NCBI GenBank assembly: GCA_025603075.1
Contig: MU626306.1
Coordinates: 1-64,000, forward strand
Length of the DNA: 64,000 bases
Reading direction: 5' to 3'
DNA from: Neoconidiobolus thromboides FSU 785
Taxonomy: Eukaryota > Fungi > Entomophthoromycota
Notes under the pieces: generated by a model
The model's input: the letters and a program-made list of their open reading frames with translations, nothing else
What the model was told of the DNA's origin: nothing
Database searches by the model: none
Program-made: the position numbers and the translations under genes
Part shown: positions 1,302 to 9,762 of the stretch, one piece after another
How the letters are laid out: every line of letters starts with the position of its first letter
Numbering within the stretch: the first letter of the stretch is position 1

Positions 1302-1723
1302 ATATTTTTTTTCGAAATTCCAGCATGCTGTTTTTTTTTAGTAATTTTCATTAAACTTATTTAAAATTTGGTTACATAAAAAGTGCACAAAATATCATAA
1401 CAAAAAACATTGCAAGATCAATTGATTTGTTTTTTGGTTAGTATTACCCTACATTGTATATAAGAAACTTTCCCCCCAAGTAACTAATTCTATTCAAAAA
1501 GATAGTTTGAAATAAGATGAAAATTTAAGTCTAATGAAGAGGGTAGTTGGTTTGTTATAATATTTATAAATGATTAATAATATTGATCTATTTTTAAAGG
1601 TAGAAATTGGAAAGTTATTAAAAGACAGCTTTTATAAGCGTGTTATGCTTTTATTAATTTGTATTATAAACAAGGGATTATACATAAATAGAGGACATAA
1701 GAAAGGCTCAAACGAGCGGTGAA

Positions 1724-2107
1724 TTAAAAAGAAAGCATTTTACAAGTATTCATAGTGGAAGCCCAATAGTGAGAGAAAACGGACTTGGCGTTTGGATTTT
1801 CACAGTGAAACTTAATATCTAATTCATTAGAACCAGAGGATGGAGAAGATCTTGAAGAATCTTGATTTATAAGATCAATAACAAAGTCAGCTTCTTTTTC
1901 CTTTGAACTCTGTGGTAGATCTAATTTGCCATCCTTTGCCCTTCGATTTTGAAACCAAACTTGAAGTTTACGTTGCTCTACGCCAATTCGGTTGGCTAAT
2001 TCTTTTCGCAATTTTAAACTGGGTCGGGAGGTTTCTTGATAGATTGTTTCTAATAAGTTTAGTTCACTTTTGGCTAACCGGAAACGTAACTCTTTTTTTG
2101 AAGTCAT
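1724..2107 (-). CDS. Compact homeodomain protein, paralog 1 (127 aa)
   Basis: Helix 3 WFQNRRAK; intronless; C-terminal SHYWASTMNTCKMLSF is shared with the two neighbouring paralogs. Confidence 0.92.
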   Translation of the reverse strand: MTSKKELRFRLAKSELNLLETIYQETSRPSLKLRKELANRIGVEQRKLQVWFQNRRAKDGKLDLPQSSKEKEADFVIDLINQDSSRSSPSSGSNELDIKFHCENPNAKSVFSHYWASTMNTCKMLSF

Positions 2108-2165
2108 TTAGTTAATTTATAATTGTAATTAAAAACAAATTCCATCCAAATGTAAAATCGAATCG

Positions 2166-2178
2166 ATTTATATACCCT
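2166..2178 (-). promoter_or_regulatory. TATA-like core promoter motif AGGGTATATAAAT upstream of homeobox paralog 1
   Basis: About 60 nt upstream of the ATG; the identical 13-mer lies upstream of paralog 3 (7907-7919). Confidence 0.5.
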
Positions 2179-3181
2179 TATTGAATCATAACTTAATTAA
2201 TAAAATATATATATGAATTGAGTTATGATCATATTTTAAATGCTTATCAACTCAAATGGAATATTAACTTTTTAAAAATATATGTCTCGGTACTTTCTAA
2301 TTTAAGATCGAATAATATCATCAATAAAATATTTTATATAGAATGGCTTGAAGTTAATATAAAGCTACCAATCAATTGATAGGAAACAAAACTAGGTTAA
2401 TTCAAACAATCAATGTTCTGTTCCACTGGATTCCTAATTTCTATTTCTACTTTATAAATCTATTAGCTTGGCTTAAAGTTTTGATTTTTTGATTGATGAA
2501 TAAGTTATTTAGAAAATAGCAGATTGTTTAGTATTTAAAATAAAATTAGAAGTTAGAATTAAGGCATAAGGTAGTCAGATAGTATATTAAATTTCATAAA
2601 TCGTATGAGATGAATAGCTTACTCATTATGTTTTAAAGACATTACGAGTTCAAAAGCCTTCTTAAAATACACTGAAATACAATGGTTCTTTATTTCGTTG
2701 TATTATTAAATTTTTTAATTTTATAAGAAAATTCAAACCTTTGGTCTAGAACTTTACCATTAACGGGAAATGGATTCCTTATAAGGACATATTTTTGATT
2801 TTGTGGCATACACTTCTCATATAAAGTTAATATACTATTTGAGATAATAGCTTATCCATTAAGATAATGCTTTAAAGCTACCGCTCTAACCGGAACTATT
2901 CTTAACCAACAAATTTTTATTGAAAATACAACTATCATATAAAATTTGACTTAAAACTCAATTTAATTAATTAGGTGTAGTTTGGTAAACTAAGGTTGAT
3001 GTGATACATAATACGCAATTTTCATCCTTAAAGAACTTGTTTAACAATGACTTATCTTTAATTCTGGTGACATTGTCTTTATATCAAGTAACATATAGAA
3101 TATAGGCTGAGGTCATAAATCTGATTTTGCTGGTTTGTATAATAGCTAACGATATACTCAATTGGTTTACATGATATATAT

Positions 3182-3280
3182 GAGGGTGTTTTTTTGACTT
3201 CATTACTTTTTCCATCTTTTAAGCGCTACTTTAGAAGAAAAATTGTTAATAAAATTGTTAAATATAAAAATACATTCCCC
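3182..3280 (-). mobile_element. MITE copy 2
   Basis: Consensus match, GAGG...CCCC termini, left flank ATAT. Confidence 0.8.
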
Positions 3281-3370
3281 TATATTATTTTATTATTAGT
3301 TAATAATTTGTCCTAATTTCAAGTTGAGAAAAGGGAAAAAGAGTAAAGTGAAGAAAAAACATATCCATAT

Positions 3371-3465
3371 GGGGATGTGTTTTTTTGTTTAAGAATTTTA
3401 CTACAATCTTTCCACTCAAATAGCGCTTAAAATGGAAAAATAATGAAACTAAAAAAAACAGTCCC
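3371..3465 (+). mobile_element. MITE copy 3
   Basis: Consensus match; ATAT/ATAT TSD. Confidence 0.9.
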
Positions 3466-4312
3466 ATATAATGCTTTATTTGGGCTATAAAAGCCCACAA
3501 CTGATTTATTAGACCTAAAGAGCCATAAAGTACTATCTAATTGTATTTATTAAGGATATGATCTATATGTACCTTTTAGCCATTTCTATTCAGGAAAAAT
3601 AAGATACTCTATTATAAGGCTATTTAACTCGTTACTTATAATGAAGCTATTATGCTAAAATTCAAGGGATAGTAAAAAACTATTCATAATATTGTTTATT
3701 GCCATCAAATGAGAGTAACTATTTTTGATGACTATAAATAACGTAAATGAGAATAACAAGGTCATAAATAACTATGGTATAATAAATTGAAGAGTGAAAA
3801 TATACTTAAAATGAAAGAATATAAAATGGTTCACTAATAATTAGGTAATCATAAGTTTGTATATTTAAAATTTATTACGGTGTAATAAAAAAGGACTAAT
3901 TAATTATGTTCAAAAAAAGGATTATTTTAACTATATTTGTAAGTTTAATGTACAAATATAGAATTTAATCATTTTTATGATATAGTTTATTTAAAATAGC
4001 TATTTAAAATTAATATAAAGATAAAAAGTCTAGACTTTTATTGAGTCTAACTTTATTACTCCAGTTTTATTTTAAAGTCCACAAAAGAACACTTGATAAT
4101 TTGAAATACAATTAAATAAGGGAGGTAAGTAAAATAATATTTCAATAATAATAGCTTTAATGAGTTTAAAAGTATTTATAAAATTTAAGTCAGACACTTA
4201 CTTTAAAACACGAAACGTTATTTATTTGATTTAAAATGATTACAAAAGGATAATAAAATACGAAGAGGATAAATATAAAGAAAGAGGGTAATTGTTAAAT
4301 TAGGAAGATAAA

Positions 4313-4705
4313 TCAAAACTTAAATATTCTACAACTATTCATTGTTGAGGCCCAATAATGGGAAAATACTCTTTTTACATTTGGATCATCACTTTGAATT
4401 ATTATTATATTGTCATCCATGGATTCTTCTTCTGAATTGGTTGTGCTAATGTCAGGACTATCCAAAGGATTTGTAGCTTTATTATTTACATAAGCTAACT
4501 CATTGGAAATTAACCGCTTTTCTCTATTATCCTTAGCCCGACGATTTTGAAACCAAATTTGGATCTTACGTTGCTCTATTCCCATCCTTGAAGCTAACTC
4601 TTTCCTTGTTTTTAAACTAGGTCGTGGGTTATTGTTATATAAGGCTTCTAACATATTTACGTGACTATCGAGTAGTCGAAAACGAAATTGATTGGGTTCA
4701 TGCAT
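4313..4705 (-). CDS. Compact homeodomain protein, paralog 2 (130 aa)
   Basis: WFQNRRAK; C-terminal SHYWASTMNSCRIFKF. Confidence 0.92.
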   Translation of the reverse strand: MHEPNQFRFRLLDSHVNMLEALYNNNPRPSLKTRKELASRMGIEQRKIQIWFQNRRAKDNREKRLISNELAYVNNKATNPLDSPDISTTNSEEESMDDNIIIIQSDDPNVKRVFSHYWASTMNSCRIFKF

Positions 4706-5032
4706 CTTTTAATTTCAATATTAAAAAAATATAAAACGACATGGTTCTCATTGTTGGTATTTATACTTCTTTTTGATCATTTTTTTTAATTTATTACTTT
4801 TTATTATTGGCACCCTTACAATTATTTTACATAATTTAATACTTATTAAATGTAGTTTTGATTAAGTTTTTTAAAAATCTAGACAAACAACTCAAGAATT
4901 TCAAAGTAGTAAAATAAATTAGGCTAAATATATAAATATAGAATATCATCTCATTACAATAGTTTAACTATTTTCAACTAATTATGAAATGTAATAGCCA
5001 GTATTACATTATTTTGCAACTATTTAATATAT

Positions 5033-5131
5033 GGGGATGTATTTTTGTGTTTAAGAATTTTATTAATAGCTTTCCCACTCAAATAGCGCTTAAAAAATGG
5101 AAAAAGTAATGAAGTCAAAAAAAACATCCCC
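5033..5131 (+). mobile_element. MITE copy 4 (close to consensus)
   Basis: GGGGATGT...ACATCCCC; ATAT/ATAT TSD. Confidence 0.92.
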
Positions 5132-7109
5132 ATATCTTCTATTACTGAATTAAGTGAAGGGATTTTGTTTTATCAGCTAAATAAATTTAGCAATGGTTAG
5201 AGGTTTAGTGACATTTTTGTTTACACTTTAAGAACCTTTTTAGTGTTGTTTTCAATAATAATAAGTGAAGATATTTTAAACAAGACATAAGAGTCATACT
5301 TGCTATAGTCTGGATTTAATGAAGTATTAACTGTTGTTACATTAATAAAGTTTAAAGATCATTAAGGCAAAATCATGAAATATTTCATTAATAGAATCTA
5401 CGCGTTAAATAAATTTTATTGTAAATAAATTTATTATATAATTCGCCTTTTAGCGTATATTGCTAAATATATTTTAAATTACAAAGATTAATAAAACTAC
5501 TCATCGATTTTTTATAGTTCACTCATTGATATAAATATATATGAAATAGAATAACTATTGCTTAATTTAAATTTTTATAATAAAGACTATTTAGCAACAA
5601 TCAAAGTTAACAACTAAAAATCTTTTATTAATATTAATTTAGCCTAATTATAAATATAGATAATTTTTAATTCCGCTTTTAAACTTGATGTATTTACTTT
5701 GATTCTTTCTAGTCATTCAGAGTTCTTAGTTTTGACTTTATAGATGAAACTAACATCAAAGTTTGCATAGCTATATGCATCACTGAAATAAGTCAGTGCT
5801 ATGATTATTTTTTTACGATTTATTTTAAAGCAGAAGTAAAAGGTAGGTATTTAAAACATTAACAATTTGTTAACATCTATTTAGACAGAACATCTAGTTC
5901 AACCATTTTTTATCAATTCTATTATATTATAAATTTAAGCCTTAAAATACAGAATTTTAAATCATCTTATATATCAACTTTAACTTAATTTTGGTTGAAC
6001 CATATATCATGATAATAAGCTATCATATTTTTTTGTTTTTAATAAACGCGATAGAATAGTAAGCTTGATGCTTCGTAAAAGTATAAATATGGTTTATTTC
6101 CACTTATTGGTAAGCAATAATTAAGTATTTAAGTCATATTTCGGTAAAATAAATTTTGAGCGTAAATTTACATAATTGAAAGTGTAATATCTAATTTTGG
6201 GTTTTTAGTTTACAAAAAAAGTTTAACTGAATGCCTTAATCATAACCAAAGCTCCGTAATCAAGTTATTATCAAGTAGTGATAATGTAAATTTACAATTT
6301 TAGACTAATTACCCTTATATCTACTAGCATTTAGATATGGGGTCATATTATTTTATGAAAAATTGTTTCATTTGTAATTGTATACTGCTTAGCTAATGTA
6401 TTTGGTTATAAAGCGTTAGAATTCAAACAGATTGAATAGAATGTCTCTAACTTTCAGATAAATTAAGACAAAATTTGCCTCCTGTTTTGTATTCTAACTA
6501 CTATCAACTTATTGGTCTTAAAGAAAATTTTCCCCTTGGTGTGTATCTTTCATATTTGGTAGAGGCTGTCTGTTTCTTTACCTTTGAAGAATTAGATTTT
6601 AGTGATATGTGTAGGCTTATATGAAAACTCAAGCTTATATCATTGATTTGTAATAATATTTCATTACCTGTTCTAATGTTATGTGACACATGTTATGGGT
6701 AAATCAATAAAACTTTCCAGTTTGGTTTAGATTAAATCTATAAAATCTATAAGCATCATTTTTTATGTGTATAAAATTATAGAAGATTCATGAGCAAAAT
6801 AATCAAATAAAAACATTATAATATAAGTTTGTTTTAAAATTAAGCCTCAGGTTTCGACTCGTATTCAGTTTTAGACTTGGAATTTCATAGGATTATAAAA
6901 TAGCCTAAAAGTACTAAACTATCTAAATAGTAGTTTGATATACTGGAATGGTTCTTATAGATTATCAATAATTTATAATTCAAGTAATACTACCTATTTA
7001 ATTGTTTTATTAACGTTACGTATAAAAGTCAATATTTAAAACTTTAACATTAGGAACTTTCTATAATTGTAAATTTGAAATAAACTTATATTAAGCGAAA
7101 GTAAACAAG

Positions 7110-7143
7110 AAATTTAATAAATTTAATAAATTTAATAAATTTT
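7110..7143. repeat. Short tandem repeat (AAATTTAAT)x~3.7
   Basis: Directly visible tandem 9-mer. Confidence 0.7.
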
Positions 7144-7480
7144 AAGGCTAAATAGAATAAATGCGACGTTTTAGCAAATACTTTTTATATTTGTTTATAG
7201 TATTTACTTCTATTAAATATCAGTAGATAGAGGTACTTGTAGTGTTTTTTTGTAGTAAATTTGTATGCTAAAGAAAAAGTGCTTGAAGGAATTTAATGCT
7301 AAGAGTAAATATTAAGTTTGATCCATCCACAATAATTTGATATCGTAAGTTATATTAAATATCAAAATTGATTTCCTTTTTAAACTTATTTTAAATTCAT
7401 ATTATGTTGTATTAAAATAATTTTATTGAATGGTAATAAAAAAGATAAATAAAAATTAAACAGAGAAATTGGCAAAAAGG

Positions 7481-7867
7481 TTAGAATTGAAGCATTTTAC
7501 AACTATTCATAGTTGAAGCCCAGTAATGCGATAAAATTCTCGTGGTGGTATGCTCTTTGAAGTTGTTTGTTTGAGTGTCCATTGGAGATAGCCCTTCTGA
7601 GTTGACCGAGCTGCAATCAGGGCTACCATGATTCGTAGCTTCGCTATTTAAATGGTTTAAGCTAGCTGTAGTTGATTGCGCTTCCCTGACCTCTTTAGCT
7701 CTACGATTTTGAAACCAGATCTGTACCTTACGCTGTTCAATACCCATTCTTAAAGCTAACTGTTTCCTTATTTTTAAACCAGGTCTGGGGTTTTCATTGT
7801 ATAGGGTTTCTAGTAGGTTTATATGACTTTTAAGTAATCTTGGACGAATATCTAAATTTTTTGCCAT
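7481..7867 (-). CDS. Compact homeodomain protein, paralog 3 (128 aa)
   Basis: WFQNRRAK; C-terminal SHYWASTMNSCKMLQF. Confidence 0.92.
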   Translation of the reverse strand: MAKNLDIRPRLLKSHINLLETLYNENPRPGLKIRKQLALRMGIEQRKVQIWFQNRRAKEVREAQSTTASLNHLNSEATNHGSPDCSSVNSEGLSPMDTQTNNFKEHTTTRILSHYWASTMNSCKMLQF

Positions 7868-7906: not shown

Positions 7907-7919
7907 ATTTATATACCCT
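7907..7919 (-). promoter_or_regulatory. TATA-like core promoter motif AGGGTATATAAAT upstream of homeobox paralog 3
   Basis: About 40-50 nt upstream of the ATG; identical to 2166-2178. Confidence 0.5.
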
Positions 7920-8459
7920 ATGTTTTATATTTTTACATTAAAACTCCCATTTCACCAACACAAAAAATTGTATTAATCCGAGTTGTGATTAACATTACAA
8001 GCATATTCCTATAAATGCTTATATTAATAACCTCGACCATTTCTTTATTTGTCTTCCAAGAGTTAAAATAGAAACTATAACTATGAATCTGGCTGTGTAA
8101 TAACCTGTTTTATTGATTTTAGCGATAATATGACCTTAAAATCTAATATTGTTACTAAGTAGTATTTAGCTGTTTTTTTATTAAATCCTCTTCTATACTT
8201 TTTAGGGAATTTTCATTTAATTTTTATCACATAAATTGTATTAGAAATAAAAAGGCTTTAAGTTATAACAACATCGCCTTATCTCCCTTCATTACTTTCC
8301 TTCCTTTTCTGAGTTTTTACAATTTTTTTACATTGCGCGATAATCATATAAATTAAATAGGTTAATTTTGCTTATTCATATTTAATACTGCTTTTATTAA
8401 TAAATTTAATATTGTATCACTTTAAAAATCGATTTTAGAAAACAATTAATTAAGCATAT

Positions 8460-8558
8460 GGGTATGTATTTTTGTATTTAAGAATTTTACTAGCAATTTT
8501 TTCACTCAAATAGGACTTGAAAAATGGAAAAAGTAATGAAATAAAAAAAAACACCCCA
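8460..8558 (+). mobile_element. MITE copy 5
   Basis: Consensus match; ATAT/ATAT TSD. Confidence 0.88.
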
Positions 8559-9220
8559 ATATAGTTACCTATCTAATATGAAATAAAATACTTGGCGTTT
8601 TTGTTTTAAAGTCGAAAAATAAAAATATCAAATTAAATATAATATTTGGACTTTATTTTTCACTGTTATATGAACCTTTGATTATTATATTGTAATATTG
8701 TAATGCGATAAATACAATCCTATTTTTCCAACGATAGTTACTAAACTAAGCAATCTAATTCACTATTTGTCAACCTTAAAATAGTTAATGCTTCGAATCA
8801 TAAAGGTCAATAAGGAGGAAAAATAGATTATGCTTGGTAAGGATTTTTTACGTATTGAGCCAATATACTCATAGGCGCCTTAGACACTGTGATTTATCAA
8901 TATGAGTGTATGCTTGTGTCTGCCTTTCAAGCCAAAACTACATAAAAAAAACTGAGCATAATCATACATTTGCCCACTTCGGGAGATTTGCAGAATATTA
9001 TTTGTGAAATAATTTTTAAAAATTGATGTTTGGAGTTCTACAATTTTAAATTAGTTTATATTGATATTCGGAATTAAAGTAAAGCCCTTTTTTCAAACAG
9101 CGACCATATATTATCTTAACTTTATTTTGAAATGTAAGATTGTTTCTAAAGTAATTTCTCTTTTTGGGCAAATTCACTATCACAAGGATACAAAATTGCT
9201 ATGGTTAAGCTTTTTTATAT

Positions 9221-9314
9221 AGGGATGCATTTTTTGTTTAAGAATTTATAAATAATTTTTCCACTCAAGCAATGTTTAAGAAATGAAAAAAGTGATGAAA
9301 TAAAAAATACCCTC
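9221..9314 (+). mobile_element. MITE copy 6
   Basis: Consensus match; ATAT/ATAT TSD. Confidence 0.85.
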
Positions 9315-9762
9315 ATATGACTTTTCTTAAATATAAAAGCACCTATTATAATTAGCAGTCTTTTCATTATTTTTGCCCCAAAAAGGAGATTACTTTAGAA
9401 ATAATCTGGGGCCTCCTCTAGTGTAGCTGTAGCCATCCGCTATAAAAAATTTCTTTAAAACATAATGTCTTAAATTAATTTTTATTGCTTCTAAAATTTA
9501 GATCTTATTAAAAAATTAGTTTTAATAACAAACCAAGATCGGCCCCATCCAGAAAAAACAAAAGTAAGATGGTGGAGAAAAAAATATCAACACCAAAGTT
9601 TTGAACTAATTTACTGGGTTGCCTAAATTTTTAAAAAAAGGTGGAGATTAAAATTTAATTTAAGATTGTTTTGAATTGATATTTCTCAAAAACTACGCCA
9701 CAATATTTTGATTTAAAATAAATTTTCATTCATAATCTTTCTTCACAACGTTAACTTTTAAA

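Follow-up and report, generated by a model that had tools for sequence, protein, structure and literature searches.

A trio of mini-homeodomain genes

The window studied here comprises the first 64,000 nt of contig MU626306.1 (assembly GCA_025603075.1) of Neoconidiobolus thromboides FSU 785, an insect-pathogenic fungus of the Entomophthoromycotina (Zoopagomycota), and is AT-rich, with a G+C content of ~27%. Close to its start it carries three genes, here termed A, B and C, for very small homeodomain proteins that share a conserved C-terminal tail. The listing of open reading frames (ORFs) holds exactly three of these on the minus strand, co-oriented and encoding 127, 130 and 128 aa, and the public scaffold annotation agrees, with single-exon models of 127, 130 and 128 residues. 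Stop codons included, gene A occupies positions 1724-2107, gene B 4313-4705 and gene C 7481-7867, the start codons being separated by 2598 bases between A and B and by 3162 bases between B and C. All three genes are intact. A previous sequence-only reading of this stretch had described three co-oriented intronless genes of 127-130 aa, spaced by about 2.6-3.2 kb, and both the ORFs and the gene models bear it out.

Each protein is built on the same plan, with one N-terminal Q50 homeodomain, a diverged linker and a C-terminal tail that ends at the stop codon. The 60-residue homeodomain starts at residue 4 and covers residues 4-63, corresponding to positions 1919-2098 in A, 4517-4696 in B and 7679-7858 in C (minus strand), as placed by alignment and Pfam, and in B also by an AlphaFold2 (AF2) model (homeodomain predicted local distance difference test, pLDDT, >90). 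The 17-residue tails, also on the minus strand, are encoded at 1727-1777 in A (FSHYWASTMNTCKMLSF), 4316-4366 in B (FSHYWASTMNSCRIFKF) and 7484-7534 in C (LSHYWASTMNSCKMLQF). They were delimited by protein and codon alignments and by a DNA pattern, complemented with a column profile and, for B, with the AF2 model.

Alignment of the tails shows that SHYWASTMN is identical in A, B and C, preceded by [FL] and continued by [ST]-C-[KR]-x-x-x-F and the stop, in the form first described. A degenerate DNA pattern covering the tail and the stop codon had three matches in the window, compared with 0.00 expected from 100 shuffles. No further copy or relic of the tail was found in the 64-kb window, either by six-frame motif scans or by tblastn.

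Class of the homeodomain

The Pfam Homeodomain family (PF00046) scored 53.9 bits in A, 58.6 bits in B and 55.6 bits in C, compared with a cut-off of 22.9, and no other family exceeded its own cut-off in these proteins. The WFQNRRAK stretch, previously reported for each of them, is indeed invariant, and with it Q50 and N51 (W48-F49-Q50-N51-R52-R53 in A). Assignment to the TALE (three-amino-acid loop extension) class is contradicted by Homeobox_KN scores of 14.7-22.7 bits, below the cut-off of 24, and by an alignment that lacks the three-residue insertion. The recognition residues W48, F49, N51 and R53 are all present, and the AF2 models predict the three-helix fold. Judged on these features, this is an ordinary homeodomain of the non-TALE, Q50 kind.

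The best matches in a PDB sequence profile search were paired-like/Q50 homeodomains (HESX1, DUX4 HD2, ALX4 and CRX; E 1e-12 to 1e-23), and Foldseek compared the model with solved paired-like homeodomains at a target-normalized template-modelling score (TMt) of 0.85-0.92. Paired-like homeodomains and the mini-homeodomain proteins have in common the recognition helix with Q50, N51 and R53. TAAT-type sites are established for Q50 homeodomains, and because the recognition helix matches that of the paired-like/Q50 domains, a TAAT-type target would be expected here as well. These paired-like proteins, however, come from animals and carry other modules beside the homeodomain (e.g. OAR, eh1 or a further homeodomain), and none of the matches reaches the fungal tail. 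The resemblance is that of a generic homeodomain only, with no orthology implied.

Selection on the tail peptide

In the codon alignment of A, B and C, the codons for Ser, His, Tyr, Ala, Ser and Thr differ within the identical SHYWAST stretch. Per-segment Nei-Gojobori counts were made on this alignment, as proportions of synonymous (pS) and nonsynonymous (pN) differences. In the homeodomain, pS was 0.63-0.79 and pN 0.20-0.28, and in the linker 0.58-0.70 and 0.38-0.67, respectively. The 17-residue tail gave pS of 0.62-0.74 and pN of 0.11-0.15, and its 11-residue core pS of 0.67-0.83 and pN of only 0-0.04. Because synonymous sites are saturated in every segment, the copies must be regarded as old and not being homogenised. 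By these counts the tail is the most constrained part of the protein, and strong purifying selection on the tail peptide is the simplest reading. Selection on a second module, besides the homeodomain, had already been suggested by the sequence-only reading, and the low pN of the tail core next to saturated synonymous sites argues for it.

The tails might instead look alike only because the tandem copies duplicated recently or exchanged sequence by gene conversion, without any selection for the peptide itself; gene conversion had been raised as a possibility together with the first description. What could be quoted for it is a blastn comparison in which tail DNA is 83-87% identical between copies, compared with 69-77% in the homeobox. 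This higher identity can be ascribed to the single-codon residues Trp and Met and to the conserved amino acids. The synonymous sites of the tail have reached saturation (pS 0.62-0.83) and are as diverged as those in the rest of the genes, while replacement differences are 0-15%, and the tail motif persists in other genera. Gene conversion is refuted by the per-segment counts together with the motif in other genera, and we consider an origin of the tail identity in this way next to impossible.

Relatives in other genomes

Relatives were collected by a profile search of 1.84 billion representatives and by two word-indexed profile searches. The resulting family alignment holds 12 proteins, that is, A, B, C and nine further ones from three named genera and one Logan contig. 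All 12 carry the same signature: a single N-terminal homeodomain, a length of 103-139 aa, and a tail with Ser(-3), Trp(0) and Met(+4), in which Trp lies 13 residues from the C-terminus. They make up what appears to be a small family of homeodomain transcription factors, with named sources seen so far only in the Entomophthoromycotina.

In the searches of this analysis, at least five N. thromboides proteins on two scaffolds were found to carry the tail. Paralog D (130 aa, tail VLSHYWASTMNSCKILQF) is encoded by an intact ORF at L003:9998-10390 (+) on scaffold MU626376.1. It is publicly annotated only as a 57-residue fragment (P0022), and this gene model appears truncated. The fifth and more distant member, P0154 (139 aa, tail end ISEYWMTTMSCSKVIPY), lies on the same scaffold, ~47 kb from D. 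The earlier idea that the tail defines a lineage-specific homeobox cluster is supported, with the correction that the family extends beyond the trio.

Set against the possibility that the motif is absent from relatives, a diverged form of it was found in Entomophthora muscae, in Massospora cicadina and in the Logan protein P0028. E. muscae has at least four members (P0155, P0156, P0157 with a longer model P0338, and P0269), three of which end in ISEFWATTMSCIKYYR[YH], while P0155 ends in LSEYWMTTMSHVRYLHY. The four loci are placed on one 548-kb contig, QTSX02005003.1, at about 13.5, 146, 262 and 520 kb, so family members are linked also in the transposon-inflated genome of this species. Three of these loci have identical copies on QTSX02005790.1 and QTSX02002877.1, presumably haplotigs, and P0338 seems to be P0157 with a gene model drawn too far at the N-terminus. 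Another E. muscae protein, P0159 (127 aa), is identical to P0156 along ~86 residues and then continues into an unrelated Pro-rich end without the tail, which suggests a frameshifted allele or an error in the assembly. Its name, ‘LIM/homeobox protein Lhx1’, is unjustified, as it has no LIM domain. M. cicadina contributes two members, P0158 and P0162. P0028 (139 aa, end SFFWATCMDRYKVYQF) comes from the 9-kb contig ERR10900205_420 (Logan, run ERR10900205) with 19% G+C. Upstream of its gene (contig positions 1-6000) there are six kb of 12-18% G+C without an ORF, indicating an extremely AT-rich source.

A maximum-likelihood tree of the family, computed with the tail columns included, separates two subfamilies. 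Type 1 comprises A, B, C, D and P0028 (support 88/89), and Type 2 comprises P0154 and the proteins of Entomophthora and Massospora (support 91/89). For the four N. thromboides copies A, B, C and D, homeodomain identity is 73% and tail identity 78%, with 30% in the linker. Between the two subfamilies identity drops to 49% in the homeodomain, to the background level of ~21% in the linker, and to 36% in the tail.

Metagenomes scanned with a homeobox-plus-tail DNA pattern gave 0 matches for gaps of 168-198 nt. With gaps of 120-150 nt there was one chance match, an animal-type paired-like exon, which was rejected. Two proteins of 98-101 aa from Logan contigs, P0160 and P0163, are also mini-homeodomain proteins, with a different conserved acidic-aromatic tail, SYE[ED]YFD[VI]F[IV]DENY-stop. 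A layout in which a short C-terminal motif follows the homeodomain is thus not limited to one motif.

A search of the accessible literature on homeobox genes and homeodomains in Conidiobolus, Entomophthora muscae, Entomophthoromycotina and Zoopagomycota yielded no description of the family. In Conidiobolus obscurus, homeobox genes are reported to be enriched among the genes unique to that species, and one homeobox gene to be strongly induced at conidiation (PMC9026835).

Anatomy of the tail

Ser(-3), Trp(0) and Met(+4) do not vary among the 12 aligned proteins. Several further positions allow limited choices, I/L/F/Y at -4, F/Y at -1, A/M at +1, T/S at +2, T at +3 (one C), K/R at +8 and Y/F/H at +12. 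The family consensus can be written as hydrophobic-S-[EH]-[YF]-W-[AM]-[ST]-T-M-x-x-x-[KR]-hydrophobic-hydrophobic-x-[YFH]-COOH, with the conserved core S-x-[YF]-W-[AM]-[ST]-T-M held at a fixed distance from the C-terminus. The Cys that the sequence-only reading had included in the motif is a feature of the trio that does not extend to the whole family; it is missing from some members, and the core does not contain it. A basic residue stands 2-3 positions ahead of the invariant Ser in 11 of the 12 members. The tail is a module of fixed length without indels, and all members scanned place Trp exactly 13 residues ahead of the C-terminus. Measured from the homeodomain to Trp, the linker ranges from 22 to 66 residues, i.e. 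threefold.

Such strict anchoring to the C-terminus, with all members ending in an aromatic residue or His, would suit a C-terminal degron or stability signal limiting the lifetime of the regulators, and the basic residue ahead of the invariant Ser in 11/12 proteins would suit its gating by phosphorylation. Conservation of the tail, however, is strongest 9-16 residues before the end, and its last four positions vary most. This is unlike C-degrons, which are not known to use more than the last 2-6 residues, and a degron is in our view unlikely.

Comparison with known domains and motifs

The Pfam search, applied to whole proteins and to isolated tails (E up to 10), gave no match to the tail, and in the same search the C-terminal region had no match to the OAR domain. 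The PDB sequence profile match stops by about profile position 84 of 121, short of the tail. Foldseek against PDB aligned only 50-63 homeodomain columns and none in the tail, while an ESM Atlas search with residues 100-130 returned only generic homeobox clusters with scores near 0.6, too unspecific to inform on the tail. As judged from Pfam, the PDB sequence profile, Foldseek and the literature, the tail matches no described domain, which is what had been proposed from the letters of the sequence.

Several short motifs nevertheless invite comparison. The eh1 motif, F-x-[IVM]-x-x-[ILM]-[ILMV] (FxIxxIL), binds Groucho/TLE as a short helix, and WRPW is the C-terminal corepressor-recruiting motif of HES-type repressors. 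Both are short aromatic/hydrophobic motifs of homeodomain or HES-type repressors, and WRPW shares with the tail its C-terminal position. They differ from the tail in their key positions. The tail has A or M at +1 and, where eh1 has its last hydrophobic position, the polar residues S, N or D at +5. Instead of finishing with WRPW, family members terminate in hydrophobic-x-[FYH], and their Trp stands 13 residues before the C-terminus. The Hox hexapeptide, [YF]-P-W-M-[KR], is located N-terminal to the homeodomain and binds TALE proteins of the PBC class. It resembles the tail as a Trp-centred short motif (YPWM) in a homeodomain protein, with contact to a partner homeodomain as the hexapeptide's own feature. 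The fungal motif differs in being C-terminal, longer and with other flanking residues, and gene A has only 3 residues before its homeodomain. A CaaX prenylation box has Cys as the fourth residue from the C-terminus, whereas the tail Cys is sixth or seventh from the end and absent in some members.

A parallel in architecture is offered by yeast MATalpha2. In the a1/alpha2-DNA structure, its C-terminal tail, disordered alone, forms a short amphipathic helix on the partner homeodomain a1. The mini-homeodomain proteins likewise have a homeodomain followed by a short C-terminal segment, and their predicted structures give a picture of the same kind. There is no sequence similarity between the MATalpha2 segment and the tail, and MATalpha2 belongs to the TALE class while the trio is non-TALE.

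Structure prediction

AF2 was run on a family alignment of 11 or 12 rows, and two models were obtained, for gene B and for the short-linker protein P0269. In both, pLDDT was 92-95 in the homeodomain, <50 in the linker and 51-60 in the tail. The predicted tail contains a single 6-residue helix spanning Trp, over HYWAST in gene B (residues 116-121) and EFWATT in P0269. A low-confidence tail with a short helix around Trp is typical of a segment that folds on binding.

The models also bear on a function within the same molecule, in which the tail would fold on its own homeodomain or add contacts to DNA or backbone, tuning or auto-inhibiting DNA binding instead of recruiting another protein. This could be suggested by a module of constant length on a flexible linker of variable length, and DNA contacts are conceivable for the basic residue at +8 and for the aromatic residues. 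In neither model, however, is the tail confidently docked onto the homeodomain it is joined to, in the long-linker as well as in the short-linker member, and the threefold variation of linker length also argues against such a role, which we find rather unlikely.

Promoters and transcription

A TATA-box motif precedes each gene on the minus strand, starting 71 nt upstream of the ATG in A (2166-2178, AGGGTATATAAAT), 62 nt upstream in B (4757-4767, AGTATAAATAC) and 52 nt upstream in C (7907-7919, AGGGTATATAAAT). The 13-mer AGGGTATATAAAT is thus common to A and C, while AGTATAAATAC is common to B and paralog D. With an individual TATA box 52-71 nt before each start codon, A, B and C can be considered separate transcription units. 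Apart from TATA boxes and a dispersed ~105-nt repeat, the non-coding flanks of the trio have nothing in common.

Expression was approximated from runs that carry no label other than ‘RNA?’, as the share of sampled words present in their assembled contigs. The RNA-type run X1 holds 66% of the words sampled from gene B plus 63-65 nt of flank at either end, compared with 22% for positions 1600-7599 of the window, and two runs of another study hold 28-30% of the sampled words. These shares fit transcripts over genes and not over spacers; they are not proof, and gene B is the only one tested separately.

Surroundings of the trio and the mating-type question

Neighbouring genes encode a DUF1295/steroid-reductase-like membrane protein, an alcohol-dehydrogenase-like protein, a Myb protein, a subtilase, a GH15 enzyme, a nucleoside transporter, a DEAH helicase, a Kelch protein and a C2 protein. 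Gene A is located 1.7 kb from the scaffold end, the window beginning with base 1 of MU626306.1, and the homeobox array could therefore extend past the assembled sequence. Scaffold bases 1-43 are 100% identical, on the reverse strand, to L003:5902-5944 on MU626376.1, and this match may represent a repeat behind the assembly break beside gene A.

The ~105-nt repeat is dispersed in the homeobox spacers at 1201-1308, 3177-3290, 3366-3470, 5017-5135, 8443-8563 and 9216-9318, with an inverted pair at 3177-3470. Its copies are 77-89% identical to each other, many of them are present in L003 and L006, and it is abundant on another scaffold too. It probably represents a family of miniature inverted-repeat transposable elements.

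Clustered homeobox genes, in a group of fungi with uncharacterised mating-type (MAT) loci, bring to mind a homeodomain-based mating or self-recognition locus such as those of Dikarya and Glomeromycotina, and the linkage of family members in E. muscae fits such a locus as well. The hallmark of HD1/HD2 loci is a divergent pair of a TALE and a non-TALE gene, whereas the three genes here are co-oriented and all of the same non-TALE class, with no TALE-class (HD1) partner. The neighbours of the trio include neither an HMG (high-mobility group) gene nor a TALE homeobox gene, and no divergently oriented pair occurs; those listed above, from the DUF1295 and Myb proteins to the subtilase, the GH15 enzyme and the nucleoside transporter, are ordinary genes. 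A mating-type function of the cluster is thus very unlikely.

Interpretation of the tail and its significance

We consider it moderately probable that the mini-homeodomain proteins are TAAT-type homeodomain regulators whose tail is an interaction peptide that folds on binding. According to this proposal, the proteins would bind TAAT-type sites, as inferred from the established behaviour of Q50 homeodomains, and would carry the tail on a freely evolving, disordered linker. Disordered alone, the tail would form a short amphipathic helix round the invariant Trp upon binding a conserved partner, as its anatomy suggests. The partner may be another homeodomain protein, resulting in cooperative DNA binding in the way the MATalpha2 tail acts on a1, or a WD40-type corepressor such as Tup1, in the way of eh1 and WRPW motifs. 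Our confidence in the interaction peptide would divide roughly evenly between a partner homeodomain and a WD40 corepressor, and the two are not separable. More speculatively, the invariant Ser and the basic residue upstream of it (11/12) could make binding dependent on phosphorylation.

Several observations weigh against the interaction peptide. The low AF2 confidence in the tail would fit other roles just as well, and the tail departs from the consensus patterns of eh1, WRPW and the Hox hexapeptide. In the tree, which includes the tail columns, the union of Types 1 and 2 is weakly supported (67/80), and the evidence for transcription is indirect, relying on word shares in ‘RNA?’ runs.

Homeodomain proteins gain their specificity mostly via short peptide motifs that recruit partners, and we know of very few such motifs outside animals, plants and yeasts. 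The tail offers a clean, small and conserved example in a poorly studied fungal lineage, one that includes insect pathogens altering the behaviour of their hosts (Entomophthora and Massospora). Lineage-specific short motifs are expected in homeodomain factors, and nothing is overturned by this one. At the level of annotation, the finding corrects at least one gene model and provides a family signature missed by annotation pipelines. The proteins are tiny, intronless and composed of two modules, making them straightforward to test experimentally.

The tail probably marks a small, fungus-specific family of mini-homeodomain proteins. Tentatively, it may be an undescribed cofactor-interaction motif, equivalent in the Entomophthoromycotina to the Hox hexapeptide or the MATalpha2 tail, by which an expanding and clustered group of mini-homeodomain proteins would pair mutually or recruit a shared partner in a combinatorial developmental code. 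If true, this code would serve development in insect-pathogenic fungi, for example conidiation or switching between host stages.

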